DNA of 64,000 nucleotides, taken from NCBI GenBank assembly GCA_946965045.2, contig OX337232.1:3846314-3910313 (forward strand), written 5' to 3'. Source of the DNA: Epithemia pelagica (taxonomy: Eukaryota > Protista > Bacillariophyta). A program made the translations under genes and the position numbers. This document shows, one piece after another, positions 11,927 through 64,000 of the stretch (its first letter is position 1; every line of letters starts with the position of its first letter). The notes beneath the pieces are model-generated. The model worked only from the letters and a program-made list of their open reading frames with translations, had not been told where the DNA came from and did no database searches.

Positions 11927-12380
11927 TCCTTTCTTACTACAAGAGCGAGACGAATAATAATCAGGGACGTTGGTCCAGGAAGCTTTCTGCTGGTTGTTGT
12001 TGTTGTTTATTCTTCGACAAACTCCAGCCGTTTGGTTGAACGCAATGGCCGAGGCGACACACTTCTTCTCTCTAGTTATATTGGTGCGTGTGTGCTATTG
12101 GATGATGATGATGATTGTCGTTCGTTCATACCGTCTTGTCTCAAGTTCCGGACGTTCGTTCCAAGCGAGAGAGCGAGAGTGTTCGCATTTCGCAATGCCG
12201 TTGGTGAGGCGATATAGGCGATGCTGCTTTGTGAGCACGACATGGTCAATGGACGAATGGGTAGTCGGTAGGGGCATAGTGTACCGTGGATTCCGTCGCG
12301 AGTCGCGAGCCTCCATAACGCGCTTAAGGCGTTAATTCAACACGTGCGCCGAAGGCGAATGGTGTGTCCTTATCTATTCT

Positions 12381-12609
12381 CTAGTGTCTAGTCTACCGGT
12401 CTCTGTCCTCATATGAGGACATGATGTCCAAGATATTAAAGCCTGGCAACCTTTACCAAGAGTACTATGACCAAACTAAACCTGAGGAAAACGATGGTGC
12501 CATCCATTTTTCTCTATGCTGCAAAGAATACCATGAACTGAGATGTGCCAAATGTGTCCTCATATGAGGATATGTCCTTATATGAGGACAATGGTAGACT
12601 AGACACTAG
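12381..12609. mobile_element. 229-bp MITE
   Basis: Perfect 17-bp inverted ends CTAGTGTCTAGTCTACC (12381-12397) and GGTAGACTAGACACTAG (12593-12609), with subterminal palindromes GTCCTCATATGAGGA at both ends. The outer TA or CTAG could be the TSD. Confidence 0.8.
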
Positions 12610-13182
12610 CTCAGAAAACTGCTTCCGTTTCTGCCATCGATAGAACGACAACGAATGGCACCTTGGGTAGCGACGTATCGACGGAATGACCAAATTACAA
12701 TTTGTCATTGATCGCTACTTGCTCTACGATAGTCGCTAGCTAGGTGGTAGGTGGCGCTCCTTTGAGTACCCTGAAGTAGAGGTGGCTGGGAACAGGAGAC
12801 GAGAACACTGGGCAGCAGAGGGAATGGCTCTCTCTAGCTAGGAGACGGAAACACTCTGTCGAAACCATTTTTCATGGTAGTTGCCTATCTCTACCGGTAG
12901 ATACTCGCAATTCTTGGACGACTACCTACTTGCGATCGAAGGACCAACCTCATTCGACGTTTCGACAAGCGTCGATCGGATCCCCACAAACAACTGGACC
13001 GCTGTCCAAGTCCATTCCAACCAGAAACTGCACTGTCGGCTGTTTCGTACTTTCTACTTTTCACACGCACGTTGCCCATCCCAACCATCTTCTATTGTAC
13101 GGAGAAAACATCAACAATCAACATAAAAGGAATAAAAGGAACATCGCCTAAGCCCCAAACCCAAAAGGCCTTGTCACTTCTC

Positions 13183-44225: not shown

Positions 44226-47200
44226 TTATTGAGTAAAAAGTTTTGTCATGGCACCTACATTGATACGTGCACCGCTGTGAATCCAAGGCAACAAATCCAC
44301 ATCCTGTTCTCGCAAACCACCCATATCTCCTTCACTAGCGCGCACTCGTCGCTTGAACGCGTCACGACTAGGATGTCCCAATCGTCCATACCAGGAATAA
44401 CAGAGCTTGCGACGTTCCGACTCATCGCCGCCTCCATTCACATCGTCATCGTCTTCCTCGTCCTTGCTACTAGCACTGCTCGTTTGACTACTGCTAGTTT
44501 TGCTCTTTTGTGTGGTCGTCGATGATTGTTCCGAGTGTTGATCATGATGTTGTTGCCGTTGCAGTTCTCGGTTTCGATGCTCCGGTCTGTGGTCTACAGA
44601 AAAGTCGGCCGAGACGCTGTTTCGCCTCGTTCTTCTCGCACCACGGTCGTCATCAAGATCACCACTATCGCTGGAGGAATGCATCAGACTTGGCTTTGGA
44701 TTTCCGTTCCTGTTCTGATGACCAGAATTCTTGAACAACAAATTGTGCAACGGATCCACCTTCTTGCTGTTGGTGGACGAGGAATTCGAATTCACACTCG
44801 CAATGCTCCCTCCCGTTCCTGCAATGGAGGAACGGCGTCTTCTCCGTCGTCTCGAGGACGATCGACGACGGCGGTAGGAACCACCAGAACTGGAACCGTC
44901 ATCGTCTTCACCTCGACGCCGCAAGGCTCGTCGTGCCATGCGTCGCATTTCCGAAGATTTGCTGGCCCGTCGCGCCGCTCGCATTTTGCCGTTTGGTGAA
45001 GTTGGGCTGGCCATGTTGGAACTTGTTTTGGGTGTACGTCTATGTTGGATCACATCGAGATCGTCGGATCCAGCACCATGACTTCGTGTTGAAGATATGG
45101 AGCCTTTGGAACTCGCGTCTGTTTCGTCGCCATTGGGCGACGGCTCGGTACCGTCATTGTTGCTCTTGTTTCTCCGACGGATAATGACTCGATCATCACT
45201 GATATCATCCAAACTTCCGCTATGACCACTGCCATTCATGATGACATTGTTGGCACTCCCCACACTCCCAGGTGACGATGGATCATTATTCTTTTTCCGC
45301 AACCGAGCCTTGAGGACAATCTTCTTGCTGCCAGTCTTGGAGGCAACCGTTGACAAGTCGTCATCTTTGCTATACTGGTAGTGCTCGGCTTTTTGTCGTG
45401 GCGAGTCCAATCCTTCAGTGGTATCCTCTTCTTGTCGTCTGGCTCGTCTCGTCGGAGACGCAGGGGCGGGCGACATGGGCACAGCGGCAGCGCTTGCACG
45501 AGAGGGTGACGCTGTCTCGCTGTCATTAGACTTTTTCTTTGGGCTGCTGTTCTTACTATCCAATTGTTTTCGTTCCTCCTTGGCGATTCTCCAATCTGGT
45601 GTAGCCCGATGTCCTCCGTGATAGTAGTCATTGAGTGTCCATTTGAGCTGTTGCGTCGGAGCAGCATCCGGCACTGGTTGCGGGGGTTGGCGAGCTGGAA
45701 ATTCGGGAAATTTGGCGGGCGGTGCTGGAATAATGGTTCGTTGGTAGTATTTACTAGGAGACCGACGGGGTATGGCTGTGAGATCTGACGCCGTTCGTTG
45801 AGGAGTCTTGGGGGAATCTCGTTTCTTTTTCTTCTTTTTGTCAGCCTCCTCATCTTTCTTGGGGGTGGAGGGAGCAGTCTCGGTCTCACGCTTCTCTTGA
45901 TCATATTGATGTAATACATGGTCATCATTTTCCTCGTCATCTGGATCTTCATTGCTCATGATACTACCTGTCAGATTTGTAGCATTGGTATATGTCAACG
46001 TGCTTGTGGTAGTACTCGTGTCTCGAAGTATAAGCTCCTCCCCTTCTTCCTCTTCATCTTGGTCATCTTCGTCCTCGTCTTCTTGGTTGTCTTGCAGATC
46101 GGGTGGTGGAGGGCCTGGAAGGTCTTTTGGACCTTGAAGACGGTGCATCCCTTCTCGTTTGGTCGATGACGGTGATTCTTGCTGTTGGGTCAAGGGCGGC
46201 GGTGGTATTGCACTAGAGTTGGTAGTGTTGTTGTTGAGTTTGTTGTCGGTTCGTTGTTTGGGTGGTGCTGGAACGGTCAATGACCAATACCAGGATCCTC
46301 CAGAATCGTCCGACAATTCCGATACATTGTCCGACAGATCATCGTAGCAACTCGTGTTACTACCTCCCTTGTTTTTGAATTTCGTCAGCCGAAGCGGAAT
46401 GACCATTCCACAGAGAGAAACGACATTGGAGGACGATGAATCGTCCTGATAGTGCTCCACAAGAGGCTGTTGTTGTTGGTAGTCCTCGTAACCGTCGTGT
46501 TCGTCGTGCTCTTCGTCGTCGTCCTCATCATCATCAAAATCGTCTTCTTCGTCCTCATCTTCCTCGTCGTATTCACTAGGAAAGGAATGCTTCGATGAGG
46601 AAATGGTTACCACAACACCATTTTCATTTTCGTATTGATAAAATTCTTCATCGTCTGATCGCAATATATCACGGCATTTGAGCATGGCTCCATGCAAACC
46701 CAGATCATTGCCCATAATTCCACAGAAGGCTTCCAAATGCTGTTCATAACGCTCCATTTCTTCCAATAATTGCCGATCGGCCACTTCTCGCAACAAGGCA
46801 TCCGTCATGTGGTGCAAGACATCGCGACACAAACACAAACGATCGTATTCGACAAAGCCATCGCGGACCAAGACGGCCCCCATATCAAATTTGGTATAGC
46901 CAGCGGCATTTTCTTGCTCAAGCGTTCCTGGAATCAACGCCTGCGTATGTTGAATCATGCCCGTCAATTGCTTTTGCAATTCACCCAGCGATTGTCGTGA
47001 TTTCACAGGCACTTTGGTGGTGGACAAGTCTCCGGCCGAAATGAGTCGTTCCAGTGCCTTGAGCAGCAAGACCAACCGATCGAGGCGTCGTGCAAAGGCG
47101 TGATACTTTTGACCAGCTTTGGTGATGCTGACTCCTTCCAAATGAGATTCAAATTGTTGCAAAAAGTGCTTTTTCCATTTGGCAAAGCCCCGGCGCGTTT

Positions 47201-47279
47201 CAATCAAATCCAACTTGCGCAGTAAATCCTTGAGCACCGGATCTTGATCCAGCGGGTTGGTCAAAATTGCGCGAACCAT
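44226..47279 (-). CDS. Large hypothetical protein: N-terminal helical domain (paralogous to 48397-49842), acidic/Ser-Arg disordered middle, C-terminal WY..LG.P...DVDLLPW domain
   Basis: Uninterrupted ORF with likely start MVRAILTNPL. GYTKFDMGAVLVRDGFVEY and ADRQLLE...LGLHGAMLKC are shared with the neighbouring gene. Confidence 0.75.
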   Translation of the reverse strand: MVRAILTNPLDQDPVLKDLLRKLDLIETRRGFAKWKKHFLQQFESHLEGVSITKAGQKYHAFARRLDRLVLLLKALERLISAGDLSTTKVPVKSRQSLGELQKQLTGMIQHTQALIPGTLEQENAAGYTKFDMGAVLVRDGFVEYDRLCLCRDVLHHMTDALLREVADRQLLEEMERYEQHLEAFCGIMGNDLGLHGAMLKCRDILRSDDEEFYQYENENGVVVTISSSKHSFPSEYDEEDEDEEDDFDDDEDDDEEHDEHDGYEDYQQQQPLVEHYQDDSSSSNVVSLCGMVIPLRLTKFKNKGGSNTSCYDDLSDNVSELSDDSGGSWYWSLTVPAPPKQRTDNKLNNNTTNSSAIPPPPLTQQQESPSSTKREGMHRLQGPKDLPGPPPPDLQDNQEDEDEDDQDEEEEGEELILRDTSTTTSTLTYTNATNLTGSIMSNEDPDDEENDDHVLHQYDQEKRETETAPSTPKKDEEADKKKKKKRDSPKTPQRTASDLTAIPRRSPSKYYQRTIIPAPPAKFPEFPARQPPQPVPDAAPTQQLKWTLNDYYHGGHRATPDWRIAKEERKQLDSKNSSPKKKSNDSETASPSRASAAAVPMSPAPASPTRRARRQEEDTTEGLDSPRQKAEHYQYSKDDDLSTVASKTGSKKIVLKARLRKKNNDPSSPGSVGSANNVIMNGSGHSGSLDDISDDRVIIRRRNKSNNDGTEPSPNGDETDASSKGSISSTRSHGAGSDDLDVIQHRRTPKTSSNMASPTSPNGKMRAARRASKSSEMRRMARRALRRRGEDDDGSSSGGSYRRRRSSSRRRRRRRSSIAGTGGSIASVNSNSSSTNSKKVDPLHNLLFKNSGHQNRNGNPKPSLMHSSSDSGDLDDDRGARRTRRNSVSADFSVDHRPEHRNRELQRQQHHDQHSEQSSTTTQKSKTSSSQTSSASSKDEEDDDDVNGGGDESERRKLCYSWYGRLGHPSRDAFKRRVRASEGDMGGLREQDVDLLPWIHSGARINVGAMTKLFTQ

Positions 47280-48396
47280 GGTGTGCGTGTCCTGTTTCTC
47301 TCTTTTCCGAACAACTCCAACGAAGTCTAGAGACAGCGGTGCAGATTCGGTGGTATTCCTTGCGGTTTTTGAAAGGTCCAAACTACAACCAACGGAACGC
47401 TGACCGCCAACAGCTCCTCCAAGATCGAAATTGGATGGAAAATACTCCACTGGAGAGCTGTCAATAGAAAACAAAGAAGCAATATCCTTGGCCGTTTCCG
47501 CTTTCGACTCTCATCTCTCGGGTGGCACGAAACCACACCGTGTTTTACTCTGCGGCGGGGGTCTGTCACGCCCCAAAACACACTCTCGCTCTATAAAAGC
47601 TGAAGCAAGCATGCAAGCTTGGGCGTTGCGCATCCCCCCATTCTTTCTGAATGGATTGGGGAAAGTCAGATGTCTCGGTCCTAGCTGTCTCGTCCCATTC
47701 AAATGTCTTTTTCCTCGGTTTCCGGGTTTCCAATATACACTTTGATTCTATACGGACGGTCCATCTGGAACAGTCGGTCGCGGAAATGCAAGCCGTTCTG
47801 ATCCCAACCATTCTGCAACTCGTCGATCCGCAAGGGAAGGGTCACGAGAGGTGTCGTTGGCCTGTCCACAAACGGCAATTGCATCGGTCTCGACTTTTAT
47901 GCCCATGGGACCCTCAATCTTGACCGTCCCGAAATATTCGAAGATACCAAACAATGCGTCCTCCTTTTTCTAGAGGAGCATAGTTTTCCATTCCTTACCA
48001 CATCTAGCACTCTATCAAACAACAAACAACCAAGCTCCTGTTTCGTTGACCGCAAGGACTGAAACCCAGTACAATCATGGCTTGTCGAAACAAGCCTAAG
48101 CAACTATACATAGCGGTTGCGATTCTGTTTTTCCGCTTTCTAGTAGGAGTGCATCAACAGAATACTTCTGACCACTCTAGCTCTAAGCTTCGTTTCATCT
48201 CCAAACGGGCGATGCTATGGGTGAATGAGCCATGTATGAACAAACACTATAGTACCTTCTGGTTTATGGTACAGCAACTAAATCGAGATTCCGTCATGAG
48301 AAAAAGAGAGCATTTACACTGACACGAAATGCCCATGACAATAGTCTGGAACAGCAATCACCGACTGTCGCAATGGTCAATGTCCAACGTCAATTA

Positions 48397-49842: not shown

Positions 49843-50222
49843 ACGGACAGACTTGTGTGTGTGTGTCGCGATATGATTGTCTCTCTCGACAACAAAGTGA
49901 ATCAATGATGAACAAAGGACCACTCGCTTGGAATGAATTGTGTCAATCAAGTTTCGAGTGAGATGGGTGACTTGTCGAAAACGTCAACACTGGGTTGGGA
50001 CACCCATGAAGGTTTTGTGTACAGTGGGCTGGCCAATTGTTTTGTAGATATGACCCAAAAGACCAAAGGGAAAAGTCATTGAAGAGACCCAACAAACATT
50101 CTGATGGGAAGTGTGATTCGTGTAAAAATGAACACAAAACCTGACGGTCAGACGGTCCGACCGATCACAACAGCTCATATCGGTCGAATCACCATGGACC
50201 ACAAACTACGGCCTCCAAGAAC

Positions 50223-51338
50223 CAAGAAGGGTCCGTCAATGTCGACGAACGCGGTAATTTCAGTATTCAAGTACTCGAGACGTGTCTCAATCGATACTTT
50301 GCCCTACAACAACAACAACAACAGCATCACGACCAACTGAGTCACGACGAAGGAGATTGGTTGCCTCATTGAACCGATTCTGTATTGAAAGACCGTTTGG
50401 GTCTGCAAGACACTACTCAAGTGACGGCCTTTTTGTTGCACAAATCCGATCATTGAATGGCCATTCGGCAAGTGGCTGGACGCTTTTTTAATTTCAACTC
50501 AACCACCTTGGAAAGACCGGTGCCCATTTCGCATTTTGAATTGGGGACGCAATTGTCGCAAGCCCCACAACCTGGAGCGACGGGTGGATATACCGTGTTT
50601 TGCGTGGCCGCCCCCTCGCAGTGATTGCCTCCGCCACACATTGGAGACTATCCTCCTCCCACACCGTCGTCGTCTTCTTCTATAATAGGAGGAGGTACGT
50701 GGCACAACATGGCAGATTTGCTCATCCACAGTTCCACAACAATGCGCTACAGGCCTTTTCGTCGCAACAGCAACTCGTACAATCCTTCAGCAATCCGAAT
50801 ACTGCTACGACACCTAACAAACCTCGAGTCGATCCTTGGACCACAGTCACGGGCGCAGGGCGTCGTCTCGATGGCAAGTCCACAGTGCCGTCGTCCTCCT
50901 CCATGAAATATGGCCATTGAAGGATTGACCGAAGAAGAGCAACTGCAATTAGCAATGCAATTGTCTTCGCAACCACCAGAACCGGTCCAAACGAGTAGCA
51001 GCCAAACTAAACTTGCCAATCTGACAGTTCCGGAGGAACCACTGATTGGAGCTCCAGACACTTGTCGAATTCAGTTCCGCTTCATGGGCCAGACCAGCAG
51101 CAAAAAGTCACCGGTTCTGGTCCGTCGTTTTCCCAACCGTGCACTTGTCCAAGTCTTGTATCTGCTCTGTGGTCAGCACTATCTGGATGGCCGCAACGAT
51201 AGTATGGACGTGGAATTGCGAGCGGCAGCCTCCTTTCCACCTCGAAATTTGGATTCCTTGCGGAACCAAACCTTGCAAGAAGCAAGTTTGATCCAAGGTG
51301 AAACGATTCAGGTACGTATCATCTCAAAAGGATCCTAG
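50223..51338 (+). pseudogene. ATXN3: Ataxin-3-like (Josephin + SHP-like box + UIM + UBX) pseudogene, apparently 5'-truncated
   Basis: GSVNVDERGNFSIQVL; AFLLHKSDH*MAIRQV (catalytic His, W>TGA at 50454); FNFNSTTLERPVPIS...GYTVFCV; PWTTVTGAGRRLDG; TEEEQLQLAMQLS; C-terminal CRIQFRF...VRRF...SFPPRNL...TLQEASL. Stops at 50370, 50454 and 50622, plus frameshifts. Confidence 0.8.
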
Positions 51339-51565
51339 TTAGTAGAGATGATCAAGGGACAGATGAGATGCGGCATCCATCCGCTCGGGTGAGGAAACAG
51401 GGCCGGATGGATCCGTGATGATACCCCACGTGTTGCAGTCGTATTACATGGGAGGCAAAGAGCAAAGAGGTTCTTGTGCCTCCTTCGACGGATGAATTTA
51501 GAGTCCTACGGCTGCTATGCAGGGAACAAAGCAATCGTGCAACGCATTTCTTTTTTTCCTTACTC

Positions 51566-53410
51566 TTACTGAATCTTATTTTCACTAGCGAGACTTTCCA
51601 CATCATCGTTAAATTCATCTATTGGAATCTCGTCGTCGTCGTCGTCTTTGGTACGTTCCACCGCAGCCTTGGATGTCCCGTTTCCTCCCGTTTTACCCCG
51701 GAAGGAACGGCAGAAGAAGAGGAGGAGCAAGAGAGCGACAACCGGAACGAGAACGGCTACGACAACAATCCCGGGAGAATCCGGACCGGACGATGACTCA
51801 TTCTCCGTACCGGCCACGGGAGCGTCACTTTCCAAGACGGGGGGAACATTGTCATTTTCTTGGTCCGCACTGAACTTGAGACCCGTAATGGGATCCACAT
51901 CGGAGTCCATATTCATCCAGTCGTGATCCCCCGCTTGAGTAATGGTGAGAACGTACAGGTCATTGTGCGTGGCCGCGTCGAGTTGATCCCAGGCATTGGC
52001 AGTCAAAAAGACATCCCCATTGCTCGTTGGTGCAGTACCGACAGGAGGCCGCAATTCCATATTGACCAATTGATCGTGTCGCTGCGAATCAATTTGTCGA
52101 ATGAATTGCGTGGCTCCACTCCCCGTATCTAGTTTGAGAACCAGAATGTCCCGGGTGGGTGTCGTCGTGTAGGCACTGTTTCCGTTGCGCGCTGCCAGCA
52201 GTGGTTGGCGGGTGGCCGTCAATGGCCCTTGAATGGTCCCACCCACCAGGACTGCGTCCTCGTGGACGACGCAATGGGTCAATTCCAGCACGCCACCACC
52301 GCCGCCCACTCGAAATTGCCGTTTCCAGGCCGGATCTCGACCGTGCGTATCGATTTTGAGGACAAACCCGCTAAAGCCTCCGCTCTCCGTATTGGTAGGA
52401 TCCAGCTCAAACTGTCCGGTCGTGGTACCCACGACGTAGGCCTTGTCACCCTGCAGGCAGACCCCCAGGACGACATCGTCCTTGTTTCGTTGCGATCGAA
52501 TAATTGTGCCAATGTTGTTGTGCGTTTCACTGTCATAGTCGGTCAAATCGACCGTCCCTTGTTGGGCATTGACCCAGGTCATGTACCCGTTCCAGACGAG
52601 GCCATTGGACAAGGCACCGGCGCCGACCGTCATTCCGTTGCCCGTGGTAGAACCGAAAACGACCAATTCCCGGCCCTGGTTTGAGGGGACCAAGCCCATG
52701 CCCGTGACCAAACTCTTGCCACCGGTCGTATCCAGGACGAGTTGCCACTCAGTGGTCTTGGTCTGGCGATTGAACTTGAGAATCATGGGGGAATAGGTCT
52801 GGGCCTGCGGGCCGGTCAAGCCCGTGTAACGAGGATGAGAAAAGTGGGCCAGATACTCCTTGGTGGACTGCAGGAGGTTGCTCGGGTTGAGATTGTTGTG
52901 AAAGCCGTGGGTGGGATGGAGGGCCACATACACAAACTCTTGATTGTCCGGATCCGGTACGAGCAAGGCCGGAAAGTATCCCTGCGGCAAGGTCAGCAGG
53001 GGAGGCTGGACCAGAGTCATGTCGTAATTGTCGTAATTCATTTCGTACAGATATCCCTGTTCCTGGTCCGCCTCCATGGTGGTCAAGACACCGTGCGCAT
53101 GTCCCGAGTTGCCGCCGCTCGGGGCAGCGTCCAGGACCATGTCCAGACACAACGAGGACGGCATAAAGACTTGTCGATGCATCCCCACGCCACGGTCCAC
53201 CGACAGGTAACAGGATGGGGTTGTGGCTTTGGTATCGGCCCCCAACGAAAAGAGGCGAATTCCAGTCGGATCCAGGGCACTCCCGTAGACCACAATGGTG
53301 CCCAATTCCGAACCGGTTTCAAAGGCTTGTACCACCACCATCGACCGGGGGCCCCAAAGGAGGACGAGGACAGAACAGAGACTCCAGATCACGGCCGCTG
53401 TCATTGTCAT
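51566..53410 (-). CDS. Type I membrane protein: signal peptide, beta-propeller-like ectodomain, C-terminal TM and acidic tail
   Basis: MTMTAAVIWSLCSVLVLLWG signal-like start, repeats such as VYVALH, LVVFGSTTG, AYVVGTTTG, VLVGGT and DILVLKLD, and TM IVVVAVLVPVVALLLLLFFC. Confidence 0.75.
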   Translation of the reverse strand: MTMTAAVIWSLCSVLVLLWGPRSMVVVQAFETGSELGTIVVYGSALDPTGIRLFSLGADTKATTPSCYLSVDRGVGMHRQVFMPSSLCLDMVLDAAPSGGNSGHAHGVLTTMEADQEQGYLYEMNYDNYDMTLVQPPLLTLPQGYFPALLVPDPDNQEFVYVALHPTHGFHNNLNPSNLLQSTKEYLAHFSHPRYTGLTGPQAQTYSPMILKFNRQTKTTEWQLVLDTTGGKSLVTGMGLVPSNQGRELVVFGSTTGNGMTVGAGALSNGLVWNGYMTWVNAQQGTVDLTDYDSETHNNIGTIIRSQRNKDDVVLGVCLQGDKAYVVGTTTGQFELDPTNTESGGFSGFVLKIDTHGRDPAWKRQFRVGGGGGVLELTHCVVHEDAVLVGGTIQGPLTATRQPLLAARNGNSAYTTTPTRDILVLKLDTGSGATQFIRQIDSQRHDQLVNMELRPPVGTAPTSNGDVFLTANAWDQLDAATHNDLYVLTITQAGDHDWMNMDSDVDPITGLKFSADQENDNVPPVLESDAPVAGTENESSSGPDSPGIVVVAVLVPVVALLLLLFFCRSFRGKTGGNGTSKAAVERTKDDDDDEIPIDEFNDDVESLASENKIQ

Positions 53411-53455
53411 GGTCCTACGGTACGTTGTTGCGAATGCCGAAATCGTAGGAGAGAC

Positions 53456-53816
53456 AGGGGCCTCAGAAATACATGGCAGATACATGATTGGGTTAGAAAT
53501 TTCACAAGACATAGACAAGACAGCAAAATACTTAACGAAAAATCAGACCAGACATGTCTTCTCTTACCTGTAGACATCGCGCGCCACGCGCAAAAAGCCA
53601 CGGAATCCTGCCGACTTCCCCACGAAAAAGATGAAAACGACGAGGAGTTCCGCTCCAACACGATTCCATGCCAATGAGACCGGTCGCGGTTACCGTGGCC
53701 CAGGACATGGACAATGGTGTCCATGTTTCTGGAAGGACAATGGACAGAGAGACGATGACTGGCAAGGAGGATGACTCTCCACCACCTCCAGCACCAAGGG
53801 TGGTGCTGCACAACCC
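53456..53816 (+). mobile_element. 5' end of transposon copy A (promoter region plus first ~88 codons, stop at codon 27)
   Basis: Colinear with 57670-58030 (AGGGGC..GAAATA..GGCAGA..ATGATTGGGTTAGAAA...ATGTCTTCTCTTACC). It translates MSSLTCRHRAPRAKSHGILPTSPRKR*...VVLHNP and ends abruptly at AACCC. Confidence 0.9.
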
Positions 53817-53830
53817 TGTTAGGAAAATAT

Positions 53831-56800
53831 AGGGGGATCTGGCAGAAGAAGAGGGGAAAAAAGAAGGAGAAAAAAAGAAGAAGAAAAGGAAAAAAGAAAA
53901 AGAAGGAAGAAATTATGGTAAGATTCCCTTCGTCGAGAACGTGCGATTGCCGCTATCAGAATGTGATCTAATTGGCTGCTGTCTTTGTCACTGTTTCTGC
54001 CCCTGTGTGCAATGTGTGGTGAGTGCGTGGTGGACCACGAAGCAGGAAGGAGGGGATTTGGCAGATCCCCACTACCACAGTACGTATGAGTCCACGGTAA
54101 GTGCCTGAAGCGACTGTCTTTTGCTTAAGGTAAACAGTGTCATACTCACATATGCCCGATTGCTTCTCCAGCGAAGATATTAGCATTCACCACAAAAGAG
54201 TGCGTAGAAGTCTCGTACCACTGGTACAAGGTAAGCCTAGCTACGGCAGGATTTCGGAAGTGGTTGCTCATTTTCCTCTAGCTCATTATTTCTTGGACGA
54301 TGGTTTTCTCACTGCTGTTGTTGTTCGTATCGTTAATTCTTATTTTGCTATTTCTTGCGTGTACAGCACCATGGTACGTTGTCCCAGCCAGGTGCACTGA
54401 TATTCCATTGATCGAATTGGTTGTTCTAACATTTTTCTTTTTTAAAATGGTGGTCGGTTACTCTGATGGTTTCGGCATGATTTGTCGTGTGGTGGAATGC
54501 CTCTACGGTTTCCCCGATTCCAATATTGGATGTTGCGAATGCAACAGTTCTGTATTGGCTGCATTTGAGCCGGGGCAACAGGCGGTTGATGTGGCTGATG
54601 AAGATTCCCAACGGCCGGGCACATGATCGTCGAGAGAAAAGCTGCTTGTTGCAAGAGCTGCTGTTGTACCTGGTAAATATTGGGCATCGATGATGGTGCC
54701 AACGGTGGTTGTTGTTGTTGTGGTGGTGGCGGTAGTGGTGGAAGACTGGGCTGCTCCCTCATTGTTGGCTGTTTCTGGTTTGTGGTAACTCGTGTTGTCG
54801 TTGTGCTTGTTGCGTTGATTTGGTTCTGTTTGACAGGCCGAGTCACTTGGATTGGTTCTTGTTCTTGAGCACTTGCCTCACACTCTTGCATCTCGCTGTC
54901 TTCTTCTTTTTCCTCCTCCTCTTCTTCTGGTTCTTTATCGTCTTCCATGTCCTGGTCGCTACCACTGTCCGAGTCTTCGCGGTTCGATATTTCGTCGTCG
55001 TCGTCGTCGTCGTCACATTCGAGCATTGTCTCATTGTTTGTTGCGTCCTCTGTTGGTTCATTGCATTCGTTGCAGGGGCAGTGGTCATTGCTGAGGAATG
55101 CCACTGGCCATGTTTGTTGGATCTGTTTTTGTATCGGCAGGTATTCGGAGAAGAATCGTTCTCCATTGTCAGGAGGTAAGTCTTCGACCCAATCAAATGG
55201 TTTGCTCGCTCCACAACGAACTGCCAGTTTGTTGATGAAGGCAAGCTCCTGGTGATTGAAGTGACTAACGACACTTTCCCATGCTGCAGGCATTTTCGTG
55301 TTCCTCTCCTCCATTGAAGCCGAGGCTAAACGGATTTTGAGCCGGATTTGTTTGTTATATCGTGCCGTTCCACAGAGGTTGATGACATCACTGAGATCCT
55401 CGTGCATTCCTCCATTTGCAAAGTGTGCGAGATTGTCATGCCATGATTCGAGCTTCGACTCGCCCCGGTAAGAAATCCACTCGCTGAGCCCATGTTTTGA
55501 ATTTGGACCTGGCTTGATCTCACGATACATTTCACTTACAGGGAGTGGGTCCGAGAGATATTCTGCCTTTTTCTTGCAGTTCTCAATGGCAAGGTGAGTG
55601 TCCATTGTAAACAGTGTTTGTTGCGTCCTTGGGTCGACTCGTCCTCTTGCTGCTCCAGATCCCTCTGACGCAGTTACCTTGTACTTGCATTTCCATTCTT
55701 CAAGCTTGGTGATGATTGTTTCCTTCCGCCTGATTCTTTTCCGTAAGTGCTTGCCGTATCGTGTCCGAAACTGCTTTGTCTGTCGCATTTCAACAATCTC
55801 TTTGTCAGACAGTTTCTCACCTGTACTTGACATTGTGCCATCTTTCAGAGCCGTCACAAGTTTGTTGAAGTCGCGATCATCATAGTCGTACAATGCATCC
55901 AACAAATCTCTTATTGCGTGTCCGAAGTCGATATGGTTCTTTCGTAGTGTCTTGACGATCCTCTGAATGAAATGGAAGAGTCCTAATCTTCCCTTGAGCT
56001 TCCTTCCATTCTTGTCACGCAACAATTCCTCCCAGAAGCTTTGCTTATGGGGCCAGGTGTCGGAATACATGATTGAGGGTTTAAAATTTGGTCGCTTGGT
56101 GAGTTGAATTAATGCATGGGCGAAGTGTTTTGTCTCCGTGCTTCTAACCAGAATAGCCAATGCTACCTCGCCATGTTCATTGCAGATATCCCACAGTGCT
56201 TCGGCTTGCAGTCTCTTCGGGTAGTTCTTTACCACCTGGTGAGTGTGATCTTGTGCGAAGCATATCTGACACTGTACCGCTTGTATTTCGCGTGTGTGTC
56301 GCTCTTTATCGCTTGTTCGCCACGGATTCCACGTAGACATTGAGGCTTCAAGGTATGCCTTCCGAATTGTCTCGCCCAATGGTGGAAACCGTGTCAGCCA
56401 TTCGCCATCCTTCTTCGGGTAGTCCTGAGCCTTTTGGTGCGATGAATCACAGAAAGACAGGTAGCTTGTAAGCCTCTTCCTGTAATCTCGGTTGATTGCA
56501 CTATATAACAACCGACTACATAGATCTCCATTCCCATGGGTAATCAGTAGTTCCTCAAAAACAGTTGTAGCAGTGAGGTCTAGATGTTGAGCACCTCTAG
56601 CCCACTTGGCCTCGACCGGGTACCATTTTTGAAAATGTGAGGGCAGCATATTGATCAGCGCCCCATCATTACCGGCGTGCGTGACCTTGCATTCCGGGCA
56701 GTAGTAGTTGGTGACCAGGGCGTAGTGGGGAGCACCACCAAGATTAAAAATCGGAAATAGGCTCTTGGTCTTGGAAAGGTTGGTCCTGTCTCTTTTTAGA

Positions 56801-57664
56801 GTACAGTCCCTACACTTTGGACACTTAATCCCCAACGCTTGAAATTCTTCCGGAAGGAACAGCCCCCAATCCACAATGTACAATTTCTGTCCTACTATTG
56901 AGTCCCAGAGGGCATTGTTGTTGTCGCGCACCTCCGGCACACAAAACTCCATGTTGCGCATGTACGCCTTAAGTGACGACAGGTCACGCTTCTTCTCTAA
57001 GCAGTTTTCAGCGATCGTCTTGGCCAGCGCGTAAACCATCTTCGGACAGGAAATCGAGGTGTCCGGCGCGACTTCCTTGTACTTGTCGAGTACCGATCGC
57101 ATGAATACATAGTCCGCCGACCCAACTGAAGACACGACTTTATTATTGATCAGTGATGTCGTGCGCGCAACACAGTTCTTTCTTCCTCCCCGTTTACTTG
57201 AAAGCTCGATATCCGCCGTCGTTATGGTTGTGGCTTCGTTTGAAGCCTCACATTCTGTTTTGTTGTTGAGTTGGAAGAAGAGGTTGAATTCCTCTTGGCT
57301 CATGATGATGGGCTTGAAGGTCACCTCCCTTGTTGCCTCCTTCTTCAGCCTTTCTTCCTCTCTCAATGCTTCCACCAGATGATCAGGGATGCCCTTGGTC
57401 TTTGTGTTCTTGGTACAAAACTCGTGGTGAGATCGTTTGGGGGGCTTGATACCCAGACGCTTGGCAGAACAGATTCTGCAGTCCCTGTCTTCCTCAAATG
57501 CCTTCTTCTTCTCCAGGGTGAGTTGGTTCAGTCTTCTTGCTTCCTTCTTCTTCTTTGTTGACTTTGTTTGGTGTTGTGCTAACGATTTCGCCCGTTTTGT
57601 TTGGTTGTTTCGTCGTTGGCTTTGGCAACCCATGCCCTCCTGGTCACTGGGTTTCCTTTTGTAT
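53831..57664 (-). mobile_element. Inverted body and 3' end of transposon copy A
   Basis: Begins (minus strand) at ATACAAAAGG, the continuation of the 5' piece. Its 3' ~600 bp align with 61212-61826, ending at CCCCTATA. Confidence 0.9.
54442..57633 (-). CDS. Putative DDE transposase A (N-terminally truncated, otherwise open), 1063 aa
   Basis: FAQDHT, MYSDTWP, RLGLFHF, RGESKLESWH (candidate D, D, xxH, E), with Cys/His clusters CRIC..HHEFC, CPKC..YYCPEC, CPCNEC and terminal CC..PPHDKSC. Confidence 0.75.
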   Translation of the reverse strand: MGCQSQRRNNQTKRAKSLAQHQTKSTKKKKEARRLNQLTLEKKKAFEEDRDCRICSAKRLGIKPPKRSHHEFCTKNTKTKGIPDHLVEALREEERLKKEATREVTFKPIIMSQEEFNLFFQLNNKTECEASNEATTITTADIELSSKRGGRKNCVARTTSLINNKVVSSVGSADYVFMRSVLDKYKEVAPDTSISCPKMVYALAKTIAENCLEKKRDLSSLKAYMRNMEFCVPEVRDNNNALWDSIVGQKLYIVDWGLFLPEEFQALGIKCPKCRDCTLKRDRTNLSKTKSLFPIFNLGGAPHYALVTNYYCPECKVTHAGNDGALINMLPSHFQKWYPVEAKWARGAQHLDLTATTVFEELLITHGNGDLCSRLLYSAINRDYRKRLTSYLSFCDSSHQKAQDYPKKDGEWLTRFPPLGETIRKAYLEASMSTWNPWRTSDKERHTREIQAVQCQICFAQDHTHQVVKNYPKRLQAEALWDICNEHGEVALAILVRSTETKHFAHALIQLTKRPNFKPSIMYSDTWPHKQSFWEELLRDKNGRKLKGRLGLFHFIQRIVKTLRKNHIDFGHAIRDLLDALYDYDDRDFNKLVTALKDGTMSSTGEKLSDKEIVEMRQTKQFRTRYGKHLRKRIRRKETIITKLEEWKCKYKVTASEGSGAARGRVDPRTQQTLFTMDTHLAIENCKKKAEYLSDPLPVSEMYREIKPGPNSKHGLSEWISYRGESKLESWHDNLAHFANGGMHEDLSDVINLCGTARYNKQIRLKIRLASASMEERNTKMPAAWESVVSHFNHQELAFINKLAVRCGASKPFDWVEDLPPDNGERFFSEYLPIQKQIQQTWPVAFLSNDHCPCNECNEPTEDATNNETMLECDDDDDDDEISNREDSDSGSDQDMEDDKEPEEEEEEKEEDSEMQECEASAQEQEPIQVTRPVKQNQINATSTTTTRVTTNQKQPTMREQPSLPPLPPPPQQQQPPLAPSSMPNIYQVQQQLLQQAAFLSTIMCPAVGNLHQPHQPPVAPAQMQPIQNCCIRNIQYWNRGNRRGIPPHDKSCRNHQSNRPPF

Positions 57665-57669
57665 AGAGG

Positions 57670-60600
57670 AGGGGCTCACGAAATAGAAGGCAGAAATATG
57701 ATTGGGTTAGAAAACTCACAAGACATAGACAAGACATCAAAATACTTAACGAAAACTCACACAAGACATGTCTTCTCTTACCAGTAGACATCGCGCGCCA
57801 CGCGCAAAAAGCCACGGAATCTTGCCGACTTCCCCACGAAAACAGCCGAAACGACAGGGATTTCGTCTCCAACACGATTCCGTGCCAATGAGGCCGGTCG
57901 CGGTTGCCGTGCCCCAGGACATGGACAATGGTGTCGATGTTTCTGGAGCGACAATGGACCCAACCACGATGACTGTCCCTGAGGAGAATGACTCTCCTCC
58001 ACCACCACCAGCACCCTTGGTGGTGAACCCATACAAAAAGCTCAGCAAGGAGCAAGAGATGGGTGGGCAGAGTCAACGACGAAACAACCAAACAAAAAGG
58101 GCAAAGTCGTTAGCACAACAGAGAAGCAACAAGAAGAGGAAGCAACAAGAGGCAAAGCAGTTGAGGCAGCTCACGCTTGAGAAGAAAAAGGCCTTTGAGC
58201 CAGACAGGGACTGCACCATCTGCAGTTCCAAAAGGCTTGGGACCAAGCCTCCCAAGCGCCCCCATCACGTCTTCTGCCCGAAGAACACAAAGACCAGGGG
58301 CATACCAGACCACTTGGTAGAGGCCATGAAGGAGGAGGAACGACTGAAGAAAGAGGCCAACAAGGAAGTGACTTACCATCCAATCATCATGAGGCAAGAA
58401 GATTTCAACCTCTTCTTTCGTCTCAACAATAAACCTGTCTCGGAAGCTTCAAATGAAGCAACGACCGTGACAGAGGACGATTTGAAACTTTCCAGGGTTC
58501 GGAAGGGGAAGCGCAACTGTATTGCGCGCACGGACTGCCTGATCAATAATCAGGTGACGTCCGCCGTTGGGTCCGATGAGTATGTATTTATGCAATCGGT
58601 ACTGGCTAAATACAAGGAGATAGAACAAGACGAGTCGATCACGTGTCCGAAAACAATGTACGCGCTTGCCAAGACTATCGCCGAAACTTGTTTGGAACGG
58701 AAGCGCGACGTGCGGTCACTTAAGCCGTTCATGCGAGACATGTGTTTGACTGTACCCGACGTGCGAAACAACAATAATGCCCTGTGGGACTCAATTGTAG
58801 GGCGACGTTTGTACATTGTTGACTGGGAGCTGTTTATGCCGGTGGAGTTTCAGAAAATTGGGCTTAAGTGTCCAAAGTGTAGCAACTGTACACTACAACG
58901 CGAGCGGACCAACCTTTCCAAGAGCAAAAGTCTATTCCCCATTTTTGGTCTTGATGGCGCACCGTCTTACGCCCTTGTCACGCACTACCATTGCAAGGAG
59001 TGCAATACCACGCATGCCGGCAACGACGGAGCACTTCTCAATTCGCTGCCTCCACATTTTGCGAAATGGTATCCGGTCGAAGCAAAGTGGGCTCGAGGTG
59101 CCCAGCACTTCGACATTACAACAACAACAGTGTTGGAGGAGGAGATGCTTACCTATGGCAATGGTGACCACTGTAGTGGACTATTGTATGCTGCAATCAA
59201 CAGGGATTATAGGAATAGAATAACTAACTATTACTCCTTCTGCGATGCAACACATCAGCAAGGGCAAGAGTACCCAGCGAAAGATGGAGAGTGGCTCACC
59301 AGGTATCCTCCTCTTGGTGAGACAATCAGACAGGCCTACCACGAGGCATCAAGATCCAGACTCAATCCCTGGAGAACAAGTGACTATGAGAGGCACACCA
59401 GGGAAATCCAAGCAGTGGGCTGCCAAACAAGTTTTGCCCAAGACCACACCTTCCAAGCAGTCAAGAACTATCCCAAGAGGCTCAAGGCAGAAGCTGTATG
59501 GGATGCTGCCAATGAAGTAGGCGAGATTGCATGTGCAATCTTGGTTCCAAACTTGGAAACCAAGACCTTCTCCCATGCTGCCCAACAACTCTGCAGCCGT
59601 GGAAATTTTAACCCGAGCGTCATCTATTCCGACACATTCCCCCACAAGAGCGATTATTGGGTTGGATTGTTGGGTGAAGATGTAGTCCCAAGACTGGGAC
59701 TCTTTCATTTCCTCCAGCGAATTATAAAGACCCTGCGCCATAAACACATGGACTTTGGTGACGCGTTGCGCGAATTGTTGGATTGCATCTACGAGTATCA
59801 CGATGGTGACTTCCATAAAGTCATCACGGCCCTGAAGAATGGCACCCTTGGAGGCAAGAAATGTAATGACAAGCAAATAGCAGAAATGAGACAGACCAAG
59901 GTTTTTCGCGAAAGATACGGCAAGTACTTACGGAAAAGCATCCGCGCGTTCCAAACAATCGTGATGCGCCTGGAGGAGTGGAAGATAAAATATAAAGTGA
60001 GAAGTAGTAGTGACAGTGGGCCACCGGCACGAGGAAGGCTCGATCACAAGACACAACAACCATTGTTCACACAAGATACTCACTCAGCAATCGAAAACTG
60101 TAAAAAAAAGGCAGAGTTTCTCGCAGATCCGATTCCAATGGAAGACATGTATCGTGAGATCAAACCACACCCAAAATCAAGCCATCAATTGTCCGAATGG
60201 GTCTCTTACCGAGGGGAATCCAAATTGGAGTCATGGCACAACAACTTGGCCCATTTCAGTAATGGGGGCACAAATGAAAAACTCTCGGACGACTTGAACT
60301 TGTGCGGAACGGCGCGGTACAACCGTCAGATTCGACACAAGCTGCGCTTTGTGTCGAAGACAACGGAACAACGCAACAAGAAAATGCCTGCGGCGTGGGA
60401 AACAGTGGTGAGTCATTGGAACCACCAGCAACTTGCCTTTATCAACAAGTTGGCCGTTCGATGCGGCGCATCCAAGTTGTTCGATGACGTCGAGCACTTA
60501 CCGCAAGACAATGGTGAACGCTTTTTTTCTGAGTACTTACAAGTTTATGAGCAACTCAACAAGGTCTGGAACATCTCGGTCCAACAGCATGACTTCTGTC

Positions 60601-61826
60601 CCTGTGAGAAATGTGAGGCTCAGCGCAATATGCAAGATGAAGAAACAATGCAAACAAGTGAGACACTGGAACAACAAGATACAGAACAATCACGAGAAAA
60701 TGAAAAAGAGCAACAAGTTGAGGAAACAGAAGAGCATCAAGACGAAGCAAACCAAGAAGATGACGATGATCCAATGTTGAGTGATGAGGAGGAAGAGCTG
60801 CCGCCACCACCAGCTCCAACAGTGCATCTGTCTTCTCCAACACGACCACAACGAGCACCACCACAAACACAACAGCAACCTGCTCCCAAATCGCAACCAA
60901 GAACAGCAATACAACCGGCCCCCAGACCAATCACCATGCCACAACCACAAATGCCATCACTTCCACCATTGCTTCCGCCAAATACGCCGCTTGCTAGTGT
61001 TCATCACTTTCAGCAACAGCTGCTGCAGCAAGCGGCGTATTACTCGTCGTACCTTGGTTGCCAACCGATCCATCAACAACCAACACATCCACAACCGACT
61101 CAAAATTGTTGCATCCGCAATATTCAGTATTGGCAGAGGCCCAATCGTCGGGGCATCCCACCCCATGACAAATCTTGTTCCAACCATCCCAGTAATGCAT
61201 CGTACCCTTAAAACACAACAACAACATCGGTTAGAGAGCAGCAAAAATCAACACAGCATCAACAGCCAACAGTCGCGACTTACCATGGAGGCCAGACACT
61301 TTAAGACAAAGATTCAAGAGATATAACAACAACAACGACGACAACAACAACAGTAGTGAGAAAACCATCGATCAGAAAATAATGAACTAACAAAAACTGT
61401 GCAAAACTTCTCGTCCATGCCGTAGCTATGATTGCGTGATATACTGGAAACAATGTATGCCAATATCTTCGCACAGGCAATACAATCAGAGATCAAAGGC
61501 ATATGTGAGGCTGACGATGTTTTGTATAGGTAAAAGACACACGGTGTCAGCACTTACCGTAGCCAGATACGTAGAACGACCGTAGGGAACTGCCAAATCC
61601 CCCTCCACCGGGACATTGGAGCAACACGTAGTCACCACACATCCCACACAGACCAGAAGCAGTGACAAATGGATCAACCAATGAGATCATAATATGATGG
61701 TGGCAATCGCACGTTCGTAGCAAAGGGAATCTTACCACTAATTCTTCCTCTTTTTTCTTTTTTCCTTCTTCTTCTTCTTTTTTCTCTTCCTTTCTTTCCC
61801 CTCCTCTTCTGCGACTTCCCCCTATA
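57670..61826 (+). mobile_element. Transposon copy B, apparently full length (~4.15 kb)
   Basis: Both end regions are homologous to those of copy A. Only AGGGG...CCCCT is shared between the two ends. No TSD found. Confidence 0.85.
57768..61211 (+). CDS. Putative DDE transposase B, intact, 1147 aa
   Basis: FAQDHT, IYSDTFP, RLGLFHF, RGESKLESWH and the same Zn-binding-like clusters as copy A. Single exon. Confidence 0.8.
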   Translation: MSSLTSRHRAPRAKSHGILPTSPRKQPKRQGFRLQHDSVPMRPVAVAVPQDMDNGVDVSGATMDPTTMTVPEENDSPPPPPAPLVVNPYKKLSKEQEMGGQSQRRNNQTKRAKSLAQQRSNKKRKQQEAKQLRQLTLEKKKAFEPDRDCTICSSKRLGTKPPKRPHHVFCPKNTKTRGIPDHLVEAMKEEERLKKEANKEVTYHPIIMRQEDFNLFFRLNNKPVSEASNEATTVTEDDLKLSRVRKGKRNCIARTDCLINNQVTSAVGSDEYVFMQSVLAKYKEIEQDESITCPKTMYALAKTIAETCLERKRDVRSLKPFMRDMCLTVPDVRNNNNALWDSIVGRRLYIVDWELFMPVEFQKIGLKCPKCSNCTLQRERTNLSKSKSLFPIFGLDGAPSYALVTHYHCKECNTTHAGNDGALLNSLPPHFAKWYPVEAKWARGAQHFDITTTTVLEEEMLTYGNGDHCSGLLYAAINRDYRNRITNYYSFCDATHQQGQEYPAKDGEWLTRYPPLGETIRQAYHEASRSRLNPWRTSDYERHTREIQAVGCQTSFAQDHTFQAVKNYPKRLKAEAVWDAANEVGEIACAILVPNLETKTFSHAAQQLCSRGNFNPSVIYSDTFPHKSDYWVGLLGEDVVPRLGLFHFLQRIIKTLRHKHMDFGDALRELLDCIYEYHDGDFHKVITALKNGTLGGKKCNDKQIAEMRQTKVFRERYGKYLRKSIRAFQTIVMRLEEWKIKYKVRSSSDSGPPARGRLDHKTQQPLFTQDTHSAIENCKKKAEFLADPIPMEDMYREIKPHPKSSHQLSEWVSYRGESKLESWHNNLAHFSNGGTNEKLSDDLNLCGTARYNRQIRHKLRFVSKTTEQRNKKMPAAWETVVSHWNHQQLAFINKLAVRCGASKLFDDVEHLPQDNGERFFSEYLQVYEQLNKVWNISVQQHDFCPCEKCEAQRNMQDEETMQTSETLEQQDTEQSRENEKEQQVEETEEHQDEANQEDDDDPMLSDEEEELPPPPAPTVHLSSPTRPQRAPPQTQQQPAPKSQPRTAIQPAPRPITMPQPQMPSLPPLLPPNTPLASVHHFQQQLLQQAAYYSSYLGCQPIHQQPTHPQPTQNCCIRNIQYWQRPNRRGIPPHDKSCSNHPSNASYP

Positions 61827-62500
61827 AAGTTGAAGGAAGGGAGAACAGGGAGTCACCGTTGGGGGATCGAATATCGAATCGGATGGGGGTTTGGCGCGGA
61901 ACTCTGTTTTGTGCGAAGAAGCAACCACAAACCACACCACCACCCCAACAAACGGAAAGACTGGCGGTGAATCAGAATCTACCGACTAACGTAGCTCTCT
62001 AGGAGTACTCCTAGTATGGTGTACGAGTTTCGTACCTCGTCTACTTGTACCTAGCTGAATGGCTATTGCACAAAGAATCAAAGTACTCCTTTTATTATTT
62101 GTTATTTGTTGACCATGAGACACGACGCCGACCGCCGACGCGCTGCCTTTCGCAGACACCTACTTGCTTTTTACGTGTCACGTGATTCGGAGAACCGAGA
62201 AATAAGCGCCTTTTTGCTGTTATAAGCCTTGGCCTTATGGCCTTGGCCTTCTGGGTCTGCTACAATAGCCTCCGCCAACAGGGATACCCATTATTTCTTG
62301 TCGATAGGTGACATTTTTACTGTAAGGTTGACAAATTCTACAATTAATCTACAAAGGTCCATATTGCCCTTCTGGTGCGACATTGGTTTTCTTTTCCTTT
62401 ATTATAGCCTAGTCGATTGTCCACAGTTGTCCACTTATGTAGAGTAAAGTCGGATTATGATGAGATAATCTTATGGGCATTAAGCAAAGGTGCGGCTTTT

Positions 62501-63899
62501 CCCTCGGTATCAGTGTCCACTGCTTAGCTGTTTTTTGTCTGTGCCACCTTCATAGGTTCCCAAGTGGACACAGACAGAAAATTTCCTTTTTGACGCAAAT
62601 GGAAATGACTAAATTGCAAATTGGCACGCATACACAGCTGGAGTTTTCGCAGTTCATGAATCAGACGCATGCCCAGCAAGCGGCCCTGCGTGGATGACGG
62701 TTGGTTGGTCTTTGCAGAATGCGCCATCCAAATCCCCCATAAAATCATACAGAGGCCATCACCCACAATGGCATGGCATGAATTGTCGCCTTTCATGCAA
62801 TTGAGGTAAGTTTGAACGTACAAAAATGTTTCCATGACAACAACAGTTCTTGTACTGTCATTCTAACTTCTCCCTCACACTTGTATTCGTTTTTCTCTTC
62901 TGATATTCGACATTTGACAACTGTCTCTCTCTCTGTCCACTTCATTGAGAGTGAATGTTTGTGCCTATGGAATGCCAATTCTCCATTCGAGCCTCGGCTT
63001 AAAATTAAAGACCACATAGAGATTCATTTCTTTGTAGGAGTATTTTAGGAGTTTCTATCAGAAGTTTAGTTCTAATCTTTCATAGATTTTGTAAGATCGT
63101 GCGTTTTATTGCCGTGCTTTCAACAACCATGACACTCTGGTGTAGGTTTGAGGCCATCTTGAAGCATATCTGATCGACTCTGTGATCTATGAAGACTAGT
63201 TTGAGTAGGCCTAGTGGCAACAAGCTGCCTCAGTTTGTCGTCATCTCTAGGTTTAGGTACTTGAGTATCCGACACACAACGAAAGGTTCTTGATCTGTGG
63301 TCGACATGGAGATGGGCGAAGCACAATGATGACAGTAAAAAAACATGCTACAAAAATAAGAACACAACCAGCCAACAATCAAACAGCACTACGATTAAAG
63401 CAAGGAGAAGTTGTGGCAAACGGCCGACAATGACTTGTCCTCCATTTCATTGCGACAAAATAAAAGGAGCACCAAGCATCAACATTAACAGGGACAAAGA
63501 TTAATGAGATAACGTGTGAGAAAACTATATAGGACATGAAAGAAGCTAAGAGACAAACAACAAGCAACAAGAGAGAAAAACCAAAATACTGCTTCAGGTC
63601 GCAAGGATTCGGAAAGAGCTCGTTTCATGGTCAATGTCGATGTTTTTGACACCGCGTGTGAGATTTTTGTGACGAGACGAGAGTCGTGTGAAAGGATTCC
63701 AAATTTGAATCGTGGTCACGGTCACAGGAAGATGCTAATCGCCAACTGTCACTTGCACGCCGGCATTTCCACCAGCACGAGGAACCATATTGGTGAAAAG
63801 GACAGACGAAAAGTGAAATTTTCTGTCTGTGTCCACTTGGGAACCTATGAAGGTGGCACAGACAAAAAGCAGCTAAGCAGTGGACACTGATACCGAGGG
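62501..63899. mobile_element. 1.4-kb non-autonomous element with 85-bp TIRs, CCC...GGG termini and TTTT flanks
   Basis: 62501-62585 is the reverse complement of 63815-63899 with one mismatch. TTTT lies immediately outside both ends as a direct repeat. The interior has only stop-riddled frames. Confidence 0.75.
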
Positions 63900-64000
63900 T
63901 TTTTGGCAAAATGCGAATTCCCCAACAGGGTATTCGCAACAAACGGCAGAAGACCGCCAAAAGACGACAGCTCGTGGCTATAGTGTATTGCATCGCGTTG

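Follow-up and report, generated by a model that had tools for sequence, protein, structure and literature searches.

A single inversion within a former tandem of Dada-like transposons in the diatom Epithemia pelagica

Introduction

Dada is a superfamily of DNA transposons that was described by Kojima and Jurka in 2013 (PMC3706591), with a survey in fish (PMC8869645), and it is known from a stramenopile, Ectocarpus. Dada elements have target-site duplications (TSDs) of 6-7 bp, no terminal inverted repeats (TIRs), sub-terminal inverted repeats, and zinc fingers at the N- and C-terminal ends of the transposase (PMC3706591). The same study reported that copies can lie in tandem parted by a single TSD hexamer, that the flanks of many copies do not match, as in Dada-tL and Dada-tA, and that one family replaces its target hexamer 'by an unknown mechanism' (PMC3706591). 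Nothing is known experimentally about Dada movement. Here we describe two related transposons of this kind, which we call A and B, in a stretch of 64,000 nucleotides from the diatom Epithemia pelagica (assembly GCA_946965045.2, contig OX337232.1, positions 3,846,314 to 3,910,313 of the forward strand). This whole stretch is called the window below, and positions are given in its coordinates.

Three other systems have to be considered in order to understand this locus. In the reversed-ends transposition of maize Ac/Ds the element termini join the target directly, an 8-bp TSD is made and the segment between the two elements is lost. In the bacterial element ISCth4 the donor 3'-OH at one end attacks flanking DNA 6-8 bp beyond the other end, a junction spacer of 6 bp is optimal and the junctions are the reactive species (PMC7780238). 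Finally, tandem dimers are described for (IS30)2 and relatives (PMC9333248), in which elements lie head-to-tail with a few bp between abutted ends, which arise from one element or from two copies, and whose junction is recombinogenic and leads to inversions and deletions.

Results

Two halves of one A element flank an inversion joint

The locus contains two open reading frames (ORFs) that diverge across 134 bp, one of 1063 aa on the minus strand (54442-57633) and one of 1147 aa on the plus strand (57768-61211), and the two proteins share 62% identity. This layout is as described in a first-pass annotation of the window, which also proposed that a former A-B tandem had undergone a single inversion. 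We find that one inversion accounts for the structure exactly, and that A and B are mobile elements of one family which formerly lay in tandem. An orphan 5' piece (53456-53816) shares 86.5% identity with the start of B, and the minus-strand A body matches B at about 70%. The parts of the locus are the following:

53451-53456: left flanking hexamer GAGACA; the empty allele has GTATGT there, and the loose-end consensus of contigs X1, X2 and X5 lies at 53451
53457-53816, plus strand: element A nt 1-360, with the 5' terminus GGGGCCTCAG, the leader and the first 52 codons (MPMRPV...LHNP) of the A transposase; terminus set from five loci with unlike left flanks
Between 53816 and 53817: joint J1
53817-53822, minus strand: hexamer CTAACA (TGTTAG on the plus strand), the 6 nt once beyond the A 3' terminus, inverted along with the body; A copies at other loci diverge straight after ...TATATTTTC, and contig loose ends at 53822/53823 agree
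53823-57664, minus strand: inverted remainder of element A, running from nt 361 up to its 3' terminus (...CCCCCTATATTTTC), with the 1063-aa ORF starting at the internal Met of MGCQSQ; 98-99% identical to intact A copies, which continue it from the 5' piece, and 99% to P0002
Between 57664 and 57665: joint J2
57665-57670: hexamer AGAGGA before the B 5' terminus; B copies at L002, L007, L008, L009 and L012 all begin GGGGCTCACG, the preceding bases being unlike
57671-61831, plus strand: element B, complete, 4161 nt, with the 1147-aa ORF; identity to the B copies of five other loci is 98.5-99.9%
61832-61837: right flanking hexamer GAAGGA; the right flank of the empty allele begins at 61838 (AGGGAGAACAGGGAG..., a 15-mer unique in the window)

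A word search retrieved P0002, a protein of 1119 aa that is 99% identical to the product of the minus-strand ORF and whose 60 additional N-terminal residues match the orphan 5' piece. Intact A elements are found at the P0002 locus (L001) and at L004, L005 and L006, all of them other loci of assembly ERZ21939226. In these four copies ...CACAACCC continues straight into ATACAAAAGG..., and the bases at window positions 53816 and 57664 are adjacent, with no loss or gain. The four intact copies therefore bridge the joint exactly, in agreement with the joining without gap or overlap that had been proposed, and translation across the restored joint gives the predicted NPYK. The 5' piece is 100% identical to the A copy of L001 and differs from those of L004, L005 and L006 at 2-4 of 360 positions. 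Because it differs from intact A at 0-4 of 360 positions, as compared to about 15% from B, it is A-type like the body. The orphan 5' piece and the inverted body thus complement each other to the base as the two parts of a single A element.

Flipping 53817-57664 restores A, the hexamers CTAACA and AGAGGA in succession (CTAACAAGAGGA) and B, with a spacer of 12 nt between the elements. One break corresponds to the exact midpoint of this spacer, 6 nt outside the A 3' terminus and 6 nt outside the B 5' terminus, and the other lies between A nt 360 and 361. The restored tandem and the closeness of one break to two element ends had been recognized before, but the distances given then (elements 19 nt apart, break 14 and 5 nt from the ends) have to be corrected to 12 nt and 6 + 6 nt. 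We looked for loss, gain, duplication, microhomology and inverted repeats at both joints and found none.

The inversion left the inverted A without its leader and first 52 codons, with a frame that is open from the internal Met of MGCQSQ. This Met lies 6 nt plus about 30 nt from the B 5' end, and B-type gene models likewise begin at variable N-terminal Mets. The open body and a stop in the 5' piece (after PRKR) had both been seen in the first-pass annotation. The intact A copies share this stop upstream of their start codon, so it is a trait of the subfamily and not decay of an orphaned piece.

Mis-joins are a risk among elements that are multi-copy and 98-100% alike, and we considered that the arrangement could be an assembly artefact, or an unrelated A fragment lying beside a 5'-truncated A. 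Contigs from public runs collapse repeat copies, so they neither confirm nor deny J1 and J2; the same contigs carry, from other loci, intact-A joints, one A-A junction and one B-B junction. Against an artefact, the same inverted arrangement is present at 99.99% identity to the window in ctg1347l (L003), a 1.41-Mb long-read contig of ERZ21939226 on which the exact 1063-aa ORF was found, so that two assembly versions agree. Moreover, a fragment (nt 1-360) and a body (nt 361 to the end) that complement each other to the base would not result from independent truncations. We find this explanation hardly credible.

Element ends, target duplications and tandem copies

The ends were refined from the flanks of 13 copies, namely A and B of the window and copies at L001 (two), L002, L004/L006, L005, L007, L008, L009 (two), L011 and L012 (two). 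Element A extends from GGGGCCTCAG... (5' terminus at 53457) to ...CCCCCTATATTTTC (3' terminus at 53823, minus strand), its 3' terminal sequence being ...TATATTTTC. Element B opens with GGGGCTC at 57671 and, from the copies compared, extends from GGGGCTCACG... to ...CCCCCTATAAAGT(C/T). The 5' and 3' ends of the family are unlike each other, and no TIRs exceeding shuffled controls were found. The motif (T)GGCAG / GCAGAA occurs at nt 18-25 from both termini, in the same register in A and B, but the matches are individually weak (equalled in 91 and 741 of 2000 shuffles).

Perfect 6-bp TSDs surround the copies at L005 (TTCCGG), L008 (CTGTCA) and L012 (GATAGA, three times), and repeated hexamers are also present at L001 (GTAAAA) and L009 (GGCCTC), while 7 out of the 13 copies have unlike flanks. 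Several copies lie head-to-tail. There is an A-A pair with a 6-nt spacer at L001 (GTAAAA-A-GTAAAA-A), a B-B pair with a 6-nt spacer at L009 (GGCCTC-B-GGCCTC-B-GGGAAT) and a B-B pair at L012 (GATAGA-B-GATAGA-B-GATAGA) whose two copies differ at 9 positions. At L002 the 3' end of a third, C-type subfamily (52% aa identity to B) is followed by AGCCGG and then by B. In all, this is a multi-copy family with a 6-bp TSD that is habitually arranged head-to-tail with a 6-nt spacer. Since unequal crossing-over cannot make pairs of unlike subfamilies, insertion beside a resident copy is favoured as their origin. A Replitron or other rolling-circle origin of the tandems was ruled out, since the protein belongs to the DDE enzymes and the Replitron paper reports no Replitrons from diatoms.

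Right-flank hexamers recur at unrelated loci, for A as TTCCGG (L005) and ATTCCG (L004) and for B as GAAGGA (window), AGAAGGA (L002) and TTTGGA (L007), which suggests that a few bases of donor flank may travel with the 3' end. Some individual copies have features of their own. The second copy of the L009 dimer (9951-14111) has two frameshifts though it is 99.9% identical to the first, and its right hexamer, GGGAAT, is unlike the shared GGCCTC. In the A copy at L011 (7244-11823), which is flanked by the unlike hexamers ATCCTC and CCTTCC, ~400 nt (A nt ~1342-1741) are duplicated in tandem inside the element, breaking the ORF into 532 and 737 aa. The third-subfamily member at L002 (119-9717) is interrupted by a ~6-kb insertion with ORFs of 214 and 1062 aa and no Pfam match. 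Other DNA transposon genes lie near family copies at L012 (2912-4165) and L006 (831-2291); one is a piggyBac-type DDE_Tnp_1_7 gene directly upstream of the B-B dimer and the other a Harbinger-type DDE_Tnp_4 gene.

The transposase is probably of the Dada kind

Pfam searches with A, B and their relatives returned no family at the curated threshold, and only weak matches to CxC5 (KDZ-associated) and DUF6729. An exhaustive search gave 1232 representative relatives, whose conserved core spans residues about 330-953. In the B transposase the DDE residues D559, D622 and E821 are invariant among 32 relatives; a CxxC...CxxC finger is found at 368-412 and a CCHC motif at the C-terminal end, both likewise invariant in the alignments. 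A GxxH motif lies at 644-647 (G644-L-F-H647), and its G is invariant in 32/32 and 44/44 aligned relatives. Two of the 32 relatives have a DUF6729 Pfam match (E 7.8e-6), and the language-model neighbours are fish DUF6729 clusters. The structure model of the core has a pLDDT of 91.4, and its best Foldseek match is ISCth4 of the IS256 family (E 5.7e-4). Alignment to ISCth4 with VIA-align gave Z scores of 12.4-12.6 over 277-351 residues, compared to about 8.9 for retroviral integrases and 8.3 for Hermes. A profile search of PDB sequences gave no match.

Taken together, the family appears to be of the Dada kind, with motifs that match those of Dada transposases and a modelled fold closest to ISCth4/IS256. 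The motif comparison was made by eye on the alignment published by the authors of the Dada study (Dataset S1). A KDZ/Zisupton identity was dropped given this comparison and the fold match to ISCth4. Two large ORFs in the neighbourhood of family members, at 44226-47474 of the window and the 1062-aa ORF of L002, are unrelated to the transposon family and to each other.

An allele without the pair

Contigs of three public runs with the same organism label pass from window position 53451 into TATGT and then into AGGGAGAACAGGGAG(G)TCACCGTTG, a sequence that matches the window from 61838 on and occurs nowhere else in it. The empty allele thus reads ...CGTAGGA GTATGT AGGGAG..., versus ...CGTAGGA GAGACA (A ... 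B) GAAGGA AGGGAG... in the filled one. The 6-bp target has been swapped for two unlike hexamers and not duplicated. Because the public contigs join 53451 to the sequence of 61838, an allele that lacks the whole 8.39 kb exists, and the 8.39-kb unit is an insertion polymorphism, as read from one 30-nt consensus. When the exact protein of the neighbouring gene was used to seek an allelic contig with an empty or uninverted site, only the same contig was returned.

According to the empty allele, the inserted unit is bounded by the A 5' end and the B 3' end, and not by two 3' ends. This bears on the proposal that the locus is a new composite element with long TIRs, for which we find no support. The 3' regions are indeed homologous over the ~600 bp first described, but they are not close, with 69% identity overall and patches of 76-79%; the family has no TIRs and its 5' and 3' ends are unlike. 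Nor did an ~8-kb composite bounded by two 3' ends appear elsewhere in a search that covered protein clusters rather than whole-genome DNA: the truncated 1063-aa ORF is on one assembly contig only, and the outer hexamers are unlike. The segment bounded by two 3' ends is not supported as a mobile unit.

The empty allele also raises the question of whether the pair, inverted elsewhere, moved in as one unit via the A 5' end and the B 3' end. It has exactly 6 nt in place of 8.39 kb with one hexamer on each side, and the four hexamers present exceed the three expected from two successive insertions into shared hexamers. However, among the proteins of the assembly neither the truncated ORF nor the joints turned up a second time, the outer hexamers (GAGACA and GAAGGA) are not a duplication, and the evidence for the empty site comes from a single 30-nt consensus. 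We consider such a transfer very improbable.

The host ORF to the left of the pair (51566-53518, minus strand) takes its first ~21 codons from element A (window 53380-53518). The likely true start of the gene (MTMTAAVIWSLCSVLVLLWG, signal-peptide-like) is about 45 nt from the insertion, which places the 8.39-kb insertion in the leader or promoter of that gene. On the other side, 62501-62591 and 63809-63899 form a 91-nt inverted repeat (97% complementary) flanking a 1.4-kb segment that looks like a miniature inverted-repeat transposable element, and right beside it (62389-62568) the window and L003 are distinguished by an indel of about 179 nt.

Origin of the inversion

We favour, and hold to be somewhat probable, a reading in which the abutted ends were broken, probably by the transposase, and a second break and precise end joining followed. 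The observations above establish the anatomy of the locus, its family, the empty allele and the exact joints; who made the breaks and how they were sealed we infer as follows. A and B, diverged members of a TIR-less family, lay head-to-tail. A transposase assembled on the abutted ends would have placed in its active site the phosphodiester 6 nt outside the bound end. With a spacing of 12 nt this position would coincide for the two ends, on opposite strands, and cutting of both strands would yield a blunt break in the middle of the spacer. After a second break in the A 5' region (between nt 360 and 361), end joining could have resealed the fragment in reverse. The flipped segment is A from nt 361 to the 3' terminus plus the 6 nt beyond, and both joints are blunt and lossless. 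The position of the first break argues for this sequence of events. The spacer represents 12 nt of the 8.36-kb pair, and by simple arithmetic the chance that either of two random breaks falls in it is about 0.3%, so that a break at the abutted ends is beyond chance. In addition, the 6 + 6 geometry corresponds to the TSD and spacer length of the family, and 6 nt is also the distance from a recipient end at which ISCth4, the closest solved relative, attacks the flank (PMC7780238).

Several observations weigh against a break by the transposase at the abutted ends. The second break (A nt 360/361) has no transposase signature, and neither joint has a target duplication. It is in a bacterial relative (ISCth4, PMC7780238), and not in the diatom family, that cutting 6 nt outside an end has been documented. 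The restored 12-nt spacer is unique, every other tandem seen having 6 nt. Either A and B occupied neighbouring hexamers, or 6 nt were gained at one of the joints, which would place the break at a terminus and not in the middle of the spacer. Finally, the joints are read from assembled contigs.

The absence of a TSD and of any terminus fused to a target, together with joints that look like plain blunt end joining, would also suit an inversion that did not involve the transposase. In that case two unrelated double-strand breaks, or a replication template switch, would have been followed by end joining, and the break between the elements would be a coincidence or reflect a fragile junction. Ordinary rearrangements do strike these elements, as the 400-bp internal tandem duplication of the L011 A copy, unrelated to the ends, indicates. 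On the other hand, coincidence would have to meet the figure of about 0.3% given above, with the exact midpoint rarer still, and the 6 + 6 geometry matches the TSD and spacer length. We regard an inversion independent of the transposase as a real but minor possibility.

The first-pass annotation had compared the locus with reversed-ends alternative transposition of the Ac/Ds type, in which the facing A 3' and B 5' ends would be excised jointly and inserted in a target within A, inverting the segment between. The comparison is sound as far as the ends and the topology are concerned: the ends of two directly oriented elements face each other across a short spacer, and the arrangement is exactly the inversion outcome of such an event. 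On its minus strand J1 reads A 3' end, hexamer, GGGTTG, a weak resemblance to the 3' end, hexamer, GGGGC of the tandems. The mechanism does not fit, however, as each terminus retains 6 nt of old flank instead of being fused to the target, the target in A has neither the expected 6-bp duplication nor a deletion, and the two hexamers show neither identity nor reverse complementarity, whether to each other or to the target. Canonical reversed-ends transposition thus seems unlikely to us.

Two further sets of models were tried and set aside. Flap, heteroduplex and spacer-as-target models were examined for the four hexamers, and none reproduces all joints. Nested insertion (B into A, or the composite into A) was rejected since no A sequence from nt 361 onward follows B and the right flank of the empty allele starts at 61838.

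A break by the transposase at the abutted ends, followed by end joining, could be part of a wider picture. The Dada-like family might act on abutted ends in the style of IS256, 6 nt outside the termini, carry or swap flanking hexamers, insert beside resident copies and break the resulting junctions, which would lead to chromosome rearrangement. We put forward this general scheme as speculative and doubt that it will hold as a whole.

Discussion

Implications

The locus brings together a lineage that is young, intact and multi-copy, whose compact transposase is encoded by a single ORF, filled and empty alleles of one site, fixed 6-nt head-to-tail junctions, and one break at the geometric centre of a junction. 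Taken together, these lead to testable predictions on where cleavage occurs and how targets are chosen. The elements also reshape the host genome locally, as here by an insertion about 45 nt upstream of the likely start of a host gene. The inversion itself is a single, ordinary-looking event, and its link to the action of the transposase is one that we infer. Should the IS256-style reading of the abutted ends be true, the filled and empty pair would be the first natural snapshot of Dada transposition chemistry and would explain the 'replaced TSD' of Dada-tA. It would also be the first rearrangement of the alternative-transposition type in a diatom.

Comparison with known systems

Reversed-ends transposition of maize Ac/Ds resembles the present case in the directly oriented pair with facing 3' and 5' ends and in an inversion with one breakpoint there and the other nearby. 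It differs in that the window termini each retain 6 nt of flank with no duplication of the target, and it belongs to another superfamily. The IS30 dimers share with the diatom elements the head-to-tail arrangement and the abutted ends. They differ in being bacterial, with TIR-based ends and a 2-bp spacer, whereas the diatom dimers are stable chromosomal features that include pairs only 62% alike in protein.

ISCth4, of the IS256 family, is the best structural match, and the 6-nt head-to-tail spacer of the diatom family equals the left-flank hexamer at L001, L009 and L012. ISCth4 is however bacterial, with TIRs, an 8-bp TSD and an enzyme of 400 aa, and its sequence identity to the diatom family is below 10%. 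With respect to the circle or figure-eight forms of IS256-like elements, the diatom family is known here only from chromosomal head-to-tail junctions with 6-nt spacers.

With regard to Dada, the diatom family differs in several respects. In the DxxH (or CxxH) signature that follows the second D, the D's place is taken by an invariant G in the diatom proteins, with the H and the surrounding motif retained. No small-RNA gene lies at any insertion site examined, and the flanks vary between loci; searches found no tRNA in the window or at 7 loci, and no Rfam family in window 50000-64000. The favoured target of the diatom family appears to be the hexamer beside a resident family member. The diatom element is also compact, 4.2 kb with a single intron-less ORF. 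The likenesses extend to both protein and DNA. In both, the transposase is a DDE enzyme of about 1100 aa that carries a CxxC...CxxC finger in its N-terminal part and ends in a C-terminal CCHC region. By eye, the motifs around the catalytic residues are collinear: DHTF is shared, RLDIFHWIHRF corresponds to RLGLFHFLQRI in the diatom family, and LF..DP..MY..RGSNSLE to RGESKLESWH, with DP..MY..RGESKLE against DP..MY..RGSNSLE. The short sub-terminal inverted motif in the same register at both ends, individually weak against shuffles, may be a further likeness. Finally, the diatom elements share with Dada the 6-bp TSD, the lack of TIRs, the tandems spaced by a hexamer, the unmatched flanks and the replaced target hexamer.

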